Shown here: one piece after another, positions 36,464-45,752 of the stretch
Layout of the letters: every line of letters begins with the position of its first letter
Numbering within the stretch: position 1 is the stretch's first letter
Sequence record: ON529853.1
DNA length: 64,000 nucleotides
Strand: one strand, 5' to 3'
Program-made: the position numbers and the translations under genes
The notes under the pieces: generated by a model
Seen by the model: the letters and a program-made list of their open reading frames with translations, nothing else
Databases searched by the model: none
Told to the model about the DNA's origin: nothing

Positions 36464-36544
36464 TGGCGGGGGCGGAGGGAATCGAACCCCCTGGTTGACG
36501 CCTTCGGAGGGCGTTGCCTACATTCCGGTCGGCACTTCGCCCCC
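36464..36544 (-). tRNA. tRNA-Arg(CCG)
   Basis: GGGGGCG/CGCCCCC-G-CCA; anticodon loop CTCCGAA; enlarged D-loop. Confidence 0.85.
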
Positions 36545-36582: not shown

Positions 36583-36664
36583 TGGCGCCCAAGGCAGGAT
36601 TTGAACCTGCGTTTGCAACTCCGCTACGGATAAGGCCTTCGTAGGACCCCTCGGTTACTTGGGC
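36583..36664 (-). tRNA. Atypical tRNA-Arg(ACG): D-arm absent, long variable region
   Basis: GCCCAAG/CTTGGGC-G-CCA; only 8 nt between acceptor and anticodon stem; loop CTACGAA; T-arm GCAGG-TTCAAAT-CCTGC. Confidence 0.65.
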
Positions 36665-41924: not shown

Positions 41925-42009
41925 TGGCGGTGCGCCAGGGAATCGAACCCTCAACCTTGCGGTCGGCGACGGTTTTCAAGGCCGCTTGTCCCCATGGACG
42001 CTGCACACC
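41925..42009 (-). tRNA. tRNA-Ser(TGA) with a compact 4-bp/4-nt D-arm
   Basis: GGTGTGC/GCGCACC-G-CCA; D-arm GTCC-ATGG-GGAC; loop CTTGAAA. Confidence 0.8.
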
Positions 42010-42014
42010 AAAGA

Positions 42015-42110: not shown

Positions 42111-42328
42111 TGGTGGAGGCGAGGGGATTCGAACCCCCGTAGACGCCGAACCCCCGCATTACCGAGGGCCGATCTCAGGTTTAGAACGCGTGTGCCGTCC
42201 TGACCATCTTCCGCAGGCCAGGAGGTCTATCGTAACGACCCCGTCGATCGGTTGCCTCTGCGTCCCGGATTTACCCGGACCGTTGTTCTGTTCCACGGTG
42301 CTCATGCCGAAACCCGAGCGACGCCCCC
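42111..42328 (-). ncRNA. ssrA: One-piece compact tmRNA (218 nt)
   Basis: 5' GGGGGCG...GGTTTCGGC; 3' GGGGG-TTCGAAT-CCCCT-CGCCTCC-A-CCA; G3:U70 and A73 Ala identity; no anticodon arm. Confidence 0.8.
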
Positions 42329-43220: not shown

Positions 43221-43311
43221 TGGTGAACGTGGTCGGACTCGCACCGACGATGAAGGTTGTAACCTAACGGGATTAAGAGCCCCGGCCTCTCGCTACTGAG
43301 GTGACACGTCC
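43221..43311 (-). tRNA. tRNA-Lys(CTT) with long variable arm
   Basis: GGACGTG/CACGTTC-A-CCA; loop CTCTTAA; T-loop TGCGAGT. Confidence 0.8.
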
Positions 43312-43677: not shown

Positions 43678-43711
43678 AAAAAAGGCCCCGGAGGCTATGC
43701 GCCTGGGGCCT
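43678..43711 (-). terminator. Intrinsic terminator (attenuator B) just before the 15-tRNA + tmRNA operon
   Basis: GGCCCC-AGGC-GCATA-GCCT-CC-GGGGCC followed by TTTTTT. Confidence 0.8.
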
Positions 43712-43782
43712 GAAACAACTGCTGTTTTGGGATTCAGCAGGTGATCGGCCCCTTAAGGGCGCCTCACCTGCGAGGACTGGAC

Positions 43783-44951: not shown

Positions 44952-45017
44952 TTAGGCGGCGGTCGTATCTCGGCCCTGGAAGGCCTCTCGTTCGTAGCTG
45001 GTCAGACGGTAGGTCAT
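44952..45017 (-). CDS. Leaderless short ORF MTYRLTSYEREAFQGRDTTAA
   Basis: ATG lies 6 nt after the -10 of TTGACA-N17-TACAAG (45052-45024). Confidence 0.5.
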   Translation of the reverse strand: MTYRLTSYEREAFQGRDTTAA

Positions 45018-45247: not shown

Positions 45248-45669
45248 GGGACAGGCTTCAATGGGCGGCGTTTGACCGCGCCCATCTCGGCGGTAGCAGC
45301 GCACCAGCCCTGCTCGGCTGGCCCCGCCCCTCGTTCCGGCATGTGCCAGGATCGACGGCAAAGGTCAAGGGGGGAATTGCGGTGGGTACAGCTTCAACCG
45401 GCCTTGCGGCCTGCGGGTCTTTCGGGCGTCCTGCCCACCGCGCCTACTACGACGCCTTTTTCGGCCCCGGCGCGCCGGAGAAGAAAAATCGACGGGTGAC
45501 CGCTACCGGCCTCGCCTGCTGGCCCGTCCCAGCGCCTGACCTTCTCGACGCGACGCCCTTGTGGGCGTTATGGCCTTCCCGTCCGAAGACAGACGCCGCG
45601 AAGGGTCAGCGGGACCGCATGATCGTCAGCCGCACGGCCAGCGCAGCGAGAGGTTCAGAGGCCTGTCCC
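45248..45669 (-). ncRNA. Candidate ~420-nt multi-domain structured RNA
   Basis: Terminal 9-bp helix GGGACAGGC/GCCTGTCCC; several nested helices; UUCG and GCAA tetraloops; starts 8 nt after the tRNA-Gly CCA. Confidence 0.6.
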
Positions 45670-45677
45670 GGAAAGAG

Positions 45678-45752
45678 TGGAGCGACTGGTCGGAATCGAA
45701 CCGACGTCCCCAGGTTGGAAGCCTGGTGCTAAGGCCCCTCAGCTACAGTCGC
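45678..45752 (-). tRNA. tRNA-Gly(TCC)
   Basis: GCGACTG/CAGTCGC-T-CCA; loop CTTCCAA. Confidence 0.95.

Follow-up and report, generated by a model that had tools for sequence, protein, structure and literature searches.

The tRNA gene array of Brevundimonas phage vB_BpoS-Bambus very probably includes a conserved structured RNA gene, which occupies positions 45670 to 45491 on the minus strand, is ~180 nt long, and folds into three arms. The window analyzed here, a stretch of 64,000 nt, is 100% identical to the record of this phage (ON529853.1), a 348-kb jumbo phage of the Dolichocephalovirinae, and its coordinates, which are used throughout, become record coordinates on the addition of 248000. 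The RNA locus lies within an array of 20 tRNA genes detected by ARAGORN, and the final tRNA gene ahead of it, tRNA-Gly(TCC) with an encoded CCA (45678-45752, minus strand; Rfam tRNA model, 64 bits), ends 8 nt before the RNA unit starts. Because this gap leaves no space for a promoter, the RNA unit is predicted to be on one transcript with tRNA-Trp, tRNA-Gly, and tRNA-Gly. On its other side, the interval is bounded by the ATG (45229) of the small ORF BAMBUS_04780 (45014-45229, minus strand), which is annotated in the record, encodes 71 amino acids (59 in relatives), and has no family match in Pfam or PHROGs. The neighboring proteins match just a weak thymidylate kinase-like PHROG and families without assigned function in these databases, and a protein-anchored locus search using the upstream gene gave no matches.

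The interval between tRNA-Gly and BAMBUS_04780 had originally been predicted to encode a single ornate RNA of ~420 nt. A conserved, structured, and noncoding RNA of no known class directly behind tRNA-Gly is borne out, but its size is less than half of that proposed. Comparison with relatives divides the interval into three units, namely, the RNA unit, an optional 113-nt module, and a promoter-like box followed by a probable 5′ untranslated region (UTR) of BAMBUS_04780, and the long-range helices of the single large RNA fail this comparison. No Rfam family matched the RNA at the gathering threshold in the whole window or at an E value of ≤10 in the region, and its homologs in the relatives likewise had no match. 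RNase P RNA, tmRNA, 6S RNA, and SRP RNA were not detected by the Rfam models or by ARAGORN tmRNA detection, which agrees with the earlier remark that the hallmarks of RNase P RNA are absent. By these comparisons, the RNA unit is an undescribed family without an Rfam match but of a kind that is already known, the structured RNAs of phage tRNA arrays.

Secondary structure of the RNA unit

Folding energy does not separate the region from shuffled sequence of 68% G+C (MFE z-scores: 430-nt stretch, -2.68; 189-nt unit, -1.84; middle module, +0.82; Rogue homolog, -0.71), and comparison with relatives is therefore needed. The covariance model R1, built from Brevundimonas phage, CcrColossus/CcrPW, and metagenome contig (L012) sequences, matches Bambus at 45485-45673. 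In the model-fitted alignment of nine distinct sequences, 90.5% of the cells are paired, and 26 of the 48 pairs are changed on both sides; the sequences represent only about six lineages. The three-arm fold has a covariation score of 0.422 and pairs ~90% of the cells, whereas controls with the partners slid by 1 to 3 columns score no higher than 0.121 and pair 37 to 48%. A structure-blind MAFFT alignment of seven sequences gives a similar picture (89% paired, 12 pairs changed on both sides, and a score of 0.290 versus at most 0.081 when slid), and the MFE folds of Rogue and Bambus, run independently, agree on the three arms. Indels of 1 nt separate the lineages and no frame is open in all of the phages; protein coding is therefore excluded. 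In CcrColossus, where the conserved RNA lies at L005:1770-1962, the annotated hypothetical coding sequence gp095 (L005:1873-2175) runs over its 3′ half and has probably been misannotated.

Arm 1 (45610-45670, minus strand) consists of the helices P1, P2, and P3, all of which covary. P1, CGGGAC/GUCCCG (45670-45665 with 45615-45610), changes on both sides in five of its six pairs and reads CCCAGG/UCUGGG in Poindextervirus. P2, UGAAC/GAUCA (45657-45653 with 45624-45620), does so in two of five pairs, and P3, GCUGC/GCGGC (45647-45643 with 45633-45629), in three of five, its outer pair varying among G-C, C-G, and U-A in the different lineages. P3 is capped by a 9-nt loop (45642-45634) with an invariant GGCCG.

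Arm 2 (45536-45609, minus strand) is a long interrupted helix that begins right after P1 and is defined by covariation and by folds of each lineage. It corresponds to the originally predicted helix CTGACC..CTTC/GAAG..GTCAG, which compensatory changes now substantiate. All six pairs of its outer helix, CUGACC (45609-45604) with GGUCAG (45541-45536), change on both sides, as do five of the six pairs of the inner helix, and the sequence of the outer part differs in each lineage. At the tip, a 23-nt stretch (45592-45570) composed of a cUUCGg hairpin and GAAGGCCAU is identical in 10 sequences, representing all lineages but Poindextervirus, where GAAGGCCAU alone is kept. The tip also has a GCCC-ACAA-GGGC hairpin in Bambus (GCCC-ACAR-GGGC in the main group). 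The Poindextervirus version of arm 2 forms one long hairpin with AAGGCCAUAUG as its loop, closed by CGGCG/CGCCG, and a compensatory G-C to U-A change distinguishes Rogue and BL10 lower in the stem. An alternative GGG/CCC stem around AAGGCCAUAU, which costs 3 to 8 kcal/mol relative to P5 plus P6 in the main group, is replaced by GCG/CGC in Poindextervirus, and this hints that the GGG/CCC stem may also form in the main group. The two pairings are inseparable there because the tip of arm 2 is invariant.

The linker and arm 3 occupy 45491-45535 (minus strand), and arm 3 is likewise supported by covariation. The linker is GCGCUGG (45535-45529) in Bambus and GCGYUGG across the lineages. P7 pairs GACGGG (45528-45523) with CCCGUC (45496-45491); its second pair varies among A-U, C-G, and U-A, and its innermost pair is G-C or C-G. 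P7 encloses the internal loop CCAGCAGGCGA (45522-45512), with the conserved CCRGCAGG, and P8, GGCCG-GUAG-CGGUC (45511-45498).

Two tertiary pairings between these elements are possible on the basis of complementarity. The loop sequence UGGCC of arm 1 is complementary to GGCCA of arm 2, with four invariant G-C pairs and thus no covariation, and GCUGG of the linker can pair with CCAGC of arm 3 in all nine distinct sequences, the changes being one-sided and wobble compatible.

Distribution in jumbo phages

R1 identifies a single copy per genome in Bambus, Kabachok, Gurke, Colossus, and PW, with scores of 179 to 215 bits, and a distant homolog in the Poindextervirus phages CcrBL10, CcrRogue, RBC63, and BL64 (61 bits; E value of ~2e-11). 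The RNA unit is thus present in five further lineages, drawn from the Brevundimonas phages, CcrColossus/CcrPW, Poindextervirus Rogue/BL10, and a metagenome contig, with a common length of ~180 to 190 nt. It is always downstream of tRNA-Gly, between tRNA-Gly and tRNA-Glu/Asp, and the Poindextervirus homolog lies between tRNA-Gly(TCC) and tRNA-Glu; the distance from the tRNA to the RNA unit ranges from 8 to ~108 nt across the phages. In BLAST searches, the interval was found in six other Brevundimonas phages, with identities of 98% in Marchewka, but with a deletion, 92% in Kabachok, Domovoi, and Papperlapapp, and 73 to 74% in Gurke and Kikimora, and CcrPW and CcrColossus matched just its first ~185 nt. 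A pattern scan of metagenomes added one lineage, contig L012, in which the RNA is behind tRNA-Gly(GCC).

No R1 match was found in phiCbK, CcrBL9, CcrSC, or BL57, in 151 genomes of the host order Caulobacterales, or in the alphaproteobacterial jumbo phages Phosso, RpAliso, and Atu_ph07. An exact-pattern scan of viral contigs returned known Caulobacter phages alone, and the same scan of genome contigs gave 23 matches, all of them due to chance and none with the flanking motifs. Within the genomes searched, the family is confined to some Caulobacter and Brevundimonas jumbo phages of the Dolichocephalovirinae.

A cassette slot behind tRNA-Gly

Alignment of Rogue, BL10, BL57, and phiCbK reveals three states of one slot behind tRNA-Gly. 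In phiCbK, the CCA of tRNA-Gly is followed by an A/U-rich block, a TTGACA box, a micro-ORF, and tRNA-Glu. In BL57, an added element of ~105 nt follows the tRNA, and this element is the skipping-rope RNA (RF02924; 46 bits, with a gathering score of 36.7). In Rogue and BL10, the slot is filled by the skipping-rope RNA and then by the new RNA, with clean junctions. As judged from this alignment, the RNA unit is a self-contained cassette that appears to have been precisely gained or lost by phage lineages.

The skipping-rope RNA is unannotated in the records and lies directly after tRNA-Gly(TCC) at L064:1345-1441 in CcrRogue, at L071:704-808 in BL57, and at approximately L052:2647-2743 in CcrBL10. 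Its closing helix shows a compensatory change in BL57, from UCGUGGUG/CACCACGA to UCGCGGUG/CACCGCGA. The skipping-rope model, with UGAGG, GCACC, AAGAGAUGCGGG, and the closing helix, has no match in the Bambus window; the search itself works, as the model matches the neighboring element in Rogue and BL57 at 46 bits.

The block downstream of the slot, with the promoter, the micro-ORF, and tRNA-Glu, shows 92% identity whether or not the RNA precedes it and is present in phiCbK and BL57, and a self-contained gene is therefore favored over a leader. As a cis-acting leader, that is, a riboswitch-like sensor or attenuator, the RNA unit would decide by its fold between a stop at P7 plus the U-run and read-through into the small ORFs and tRNA-Glu/Asp. 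Its compact fold with long invariant unpaired segments is indeed aptamer-like, and both the Brevundimonas phages and Poindextervirus have UUUUU after the G+C-rich P7 (45484-45488, minus strand, in Bambus, two bases past P7). However, besides the retention of the downstream block in two phages without the RNA, a promoter-like box separates the RNA from the downstream genes, CcrColossus, CcrPW, and L012 lack the U-run and have other downstream genes, and P7 and P8 bear conserved loops, unlike a typical expression platform. The arrangement that defines a riboswitch or leader, in which the RNA is in the 5′ UTR of a regulated gene with no intervening promoter and a constant gene association, was not found for the unit, and we regard a leader function as unlikely. 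The U-run could be the tail of a terminator, or it could be an A/T-rich element that precedes the next promoter; the same A/U-rich block is found directly after the tRNA in phiCbK, which has no RNA there, and the U-run may be part of the next promoter instead of a terminator.

A 21-codon micro-ORF is found at window positions 44952-45017 on the minus strand (M T.. L T. Y E R E A.. G. D T T. A stop). It overlaps the stop codon of BAMBUS_04780 (ATGA), ends ~35 nt ahead of tRNA-Glu, and is kept in Rogue, BL10, BL57, phiCbK, and Colossus. The stretch also forms conserved hairpins, and a terminator is annotated there in phiCbK, so that it could be either a peptide gene or an RNA element.

The remainder of the interval

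The 113-nt module (45372-45484, minus strand) is optional, being absent in Marchewka and in a virome contig. It has the hairpins CUCCGG-CGCG-CCGGGG and GGCC-GCAA-GGCC and a possible pseudoknot in which GGCGUC/GACGCC would cross GCGGUGGG/CCCACCGC. The module is found at one place per genome and is the best-conserved part of the interval among the Brevundimonas phages (87 to 98% identity), with a single compensatory pair, an MFE z-score of +0.82, and no Rfam match. In the virome contig that lacks it, 45371 is joined to 45485, and another contig of the same run has the module; both forms thus occur within one wastewater virome run, and the presence or absence of the module is polymorphic in nature. 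Such sequencing-run matches are metagenomic contigs, possibly of DNA, and show presence alone.

The module is followed by a promoter-like box of 27 nt, TTGACC-N4-GCCGNCGATCCTGGCACA (45342-45368, minus strand), which was recognized by pattern recurrence. A second exact match of the pattern is found at 44092-44066 on the minus strand, with none expected by chance, and Poindextervirus and phiCbK have a TTGACA box at the corresponding position. Half of the minus-strand TTGAC boxes (12 of 24) fall within intergenic DNA, which makes up 15% of the sequence. A simple promoter and terminator scan gave nothing relevant. The second promoter-like box is downstream of BAMBUS_04740, and another TTGACA box occurs 70 nt further on.

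Because the promoter-like box precedes the small ORF, the stretch at 45341-45230 (minus strand) is probably the 5′ UTR of BAMBUS_04780. It contains two hairpins, CCAGCC/GGCUGG (45321-45304) and AUGGGCG/CGCCCAU (45285-45261), both of which covary through compensatory changes; the latter is among the originally predicted helices and is upheld by three covarying pairs. The same stretch includes the 3′ strand (45256-45248) of the 9-bp helix that was thought to close the ~420-nt RNA.

A single RNA of ~420 nt closed by this end helix is highly improbable in light of these comparisons. Each of its helices, together with both of its tetraloop hairpins, is present in the Bambus sequence, the MFE fold of the 430-nt stretch (z = -2.68) uses the end helix, and Gurke retains eight of the nine end-helix pairs, two of them changed on both sides. 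The end helix, GGGACAGGC (45669-45661) with GCCTGTCCC (45256-45248), is perfectly complementary in Bambus alone; it is not conserved, with seven unpaired cells in the six other Brevundimonas phages, including two mismatches in the Kabachok group and one in Marchewka. The long-range helices CTCGCTGCGCTGGCC/GGCCAGCAGGCGAG, GTCCC/GGGAC, and CGGTAGC/GCTACCG break in relatives without compensation. The first of these does not covary, three of its positions fail to pair in Gurke and Kikimora, and its variation fits the local hairpin P3. The strands of the failed helices are better explained by the local helices P1, P3, and P7/P8, and the fold described here pairs 95.7% of the cells of the same Brevundimonas phage alignment. 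In addition, 113 nt of the interval can be deleted, a repeated promoter-like box lies inside it, and Colossus, PW, L012, and Poindextervirus keep just its first ~185 nt. Homolog comparison, which had been suggested along with the Rfam scan as a check on the large RNA, therefore yields covariation for a noncoding unit of ~180 nt and no support for the end helix and the three other long-range helices, while the predicted helix GCGGTGGG/CCCACCGC holds through one U-A to C-G change.

Possible functions and relationship to known RNAs

As a whole, the mechanism that we consider probable is that of a trans-acting stable RNA of the tRNA operon. The RNA unit would be transcribed with the tRNA operon, and tRNA-processing nucleases would free its 5′ end. 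Such a release by tRNA 3′ processing, which was part of the original prediction, is made possible by the 8-nt gap and the predicted cotranscription, and the release itself could occur in this way. The 3′ end would be set by P7 and the U-run or by further processing. Arms 1 and 2, which are equally long, would dock via their invariant complementary loops (UGGCC with GGCCA), and GCUGG of the linker would pair with CCAGC of arm 3. The resulting compact RNA would work in trans during infection by binding a host component or a core phage component. In a phyletic-profile screen, no ORF of at least 40 amino acids in Rogue was present in Bambus and Colossus and absent in BL57, phiCbK, and BL9; one 484-amino-acid ORF without a Pfam domain was absent just from phiCbK and BL9 and was judged uninformative.

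The invariant unpaired blocks (the GGCCG loop, GAAGGCCAU, GCGYUGG, and CCRGCAGG) and three GGCC palindromes may point to a sophisticated biochemical function rather than a mere scaffold, such as a ribozyme or sensor acting on tRNAs or their CCA ends or self-assembly through GGCC kissing loops like a miniature ROOL or GOLLD RNA, a proposal to which we assign only a small probability.

HDV-like ribozymes occur behind phage tRNAs, and the position of the RNA unit directly behind a tRNA, its invariant internal loops, and its possible pseudoknot would suit a new self-cleaving or tRNA-processing ribozyme that cuts the transcript of the tRNA operon. This is nevertheless very unlikely: no Rfam ribozyme family (HDV-like, hammerhead, twister, and others) matches, the RNA unit begins anywhere from 8 to ~108 nt behind the tRNA and is separated from it in Poindextervirus by an entire skipping-rope RNA, and the same tRNAs are processed in phiCbK and BL57, which lack the RNA unit. 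A T-box-like reading of UGGN, made by eye only, was rejected, as it has no support from Rfam and the base after UGG does not match the discriminator of the neighboring tRNA.

Ro60 and Y-like RNAs have been reported in CcrColossus (PMC12135203, PMC4201824), and Ro60 (TROVE) is encoded by Bambus, Kabachok, Gurke, Colossus, and PW, so that the RNA unit might be a noncanonical Y RNA or another partner of the phage-encoded Ro60. Y RNAs and YrlA are defined by a GNCGAAN0-1G Ro-binding motif, a tRNA-like T-arm, a 5′/3′ stem, and a position within 4 kb of rsr (PMC4201824). YrlA (RF02553) and the new RNA are alike in that both are structured phage RNAs in genomes that also encode Ro60, but the new RNA has none of the GNCGAAN0-1G motif, T-loop, and 5′/3′ closing stem and is not adjacent to rsr. 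The YrlA-like RNAs adjoin the Ro60 gene itself, ~77 kb from the RNA unit in Bambus, and Rogue and BL10 have the RNA unit but no TROVE gene; on these two grounds, the link to Ro60 was rejected and is extremely improbable. Ro60/TROVE was found in all of the Brevundimonas and Colossus-type phages tested (Bambus, record positions 215650-216330, L016/L020; Colossus, L013/L019; Gurke, L015), accompanied on the same strand by one to three YrlA-like RNAs with scores of 30 to 42 bits, which are below the gathering score of 69. No TROVE gene was found in Poindextervirus, phiCbK, BL9, or SC.

The trans-acting RNA that we favor resembles several known RNAs by description. Phage T4 encodes small stable RNAs, species 1 and 2 (rnaC/rnaD), in its tRNA cluster, which are cut from the same precursor as the tRNAs. 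The new RNA is likewise a small RNA encoded within a phage tRNA cluster, in a different phage group and host, so that the likeness is one of description and homology is not expected. As a kind rather than a homologous family, the stable RNAs of phage tRNA clusters are noncoding, conserved in structure, and located in a tRNA transcription unit, and the RNA unit shares these features.

The GOLLD and ROOL RNAs are often beside tRNA genes, occur in phages, and are possibly cotranscribed with tRNAs (PMC5737381). The original prediction had drawn a comparison with GOLLD, and this comparison stands for the position among tRNA genes, since the RNA unit is 8 nt from tRNA-Gly in a 20-tRNA array of a phage, as GOLLD and ROOL are tRNA adjacent in phages and prophages. 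It does not extend to size or homology: ROOL (~580 nt) and GOLLD (>800 nt) have many junctions and pseudoknots, whereas the new RNA is ~180 nt, and the GOLLD and ROOL covariance models have no match in the region at the gathering threshold or at an E value of ≤10.

The skipping-rope RNA (RF02924), together with drum and FuFi-1, belongs to a set of highly conserved small structured RNAs for which a riboswitch function is unlikely and a 3′ terminator has been reported (Weinberg et al. 2017, PMC5737381). The new RNA is similarly a conserved small structured RNA, and in Rogue, BL10, and BL57 the skipping-rope RNA occupies the slot directly after tRNA-Gly. The two have no match in sequence or structure, however: the new RNA exceeds the skipping-rope RNA more than twofold in length, folds into three arms rather than one closed multiloop, and is far more narrowly distributed. 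Because it shares a cassette slot with the skipping-rope RNA, the RNA unit is grouped with the tRNA-linked phage RNAs (Weinberg et al. 2017, PMC5737381), a small set that the new family enlarges.

The tRNA arrays of jumbo phages are usually annotated as tRNAs and gaps, and the findings presented here suggest that these gaps are slots for exchangeable structured RNA cassettes, such as the skipping-rope RNA, the new RNA, and the 113-nt module. Natural plus/minus pairs are available in cultivable systems for the RNA unit (Rogue/BL10 versus BL57 on Caulobacter CB15) and for the 113-nt module (Bambus versus Marchewka on Brevundimonas pondensis LVF1), which makes RNA function experimentally tractable.

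Other elements of the tRNA array

An intrinsic terminator of textbook form, GGCCCC...GGGGCC followed by U6, is present just upstream of tRNA-Pro (window positions ~43690-43740, minus strand), so that canonical terminators do exist in the tRNA array. In addition, several unannotated gaps of the array, in which ARAGORN calls no gene, gave Rfam matches on the minus strand (43224-43311, 36467-36544, 36586-36664, 41928-42010, and 42111-42242). They comprise matches to the tRNA model above its gathering score (38.6, 35.3, and 32.1 bits), a tRNA-Sec-like match, and a partial match to the tmRNA model (31.9 bits; E value of 6e-10), and these gaps may hold degenerate or unusual tRNA-like genes.
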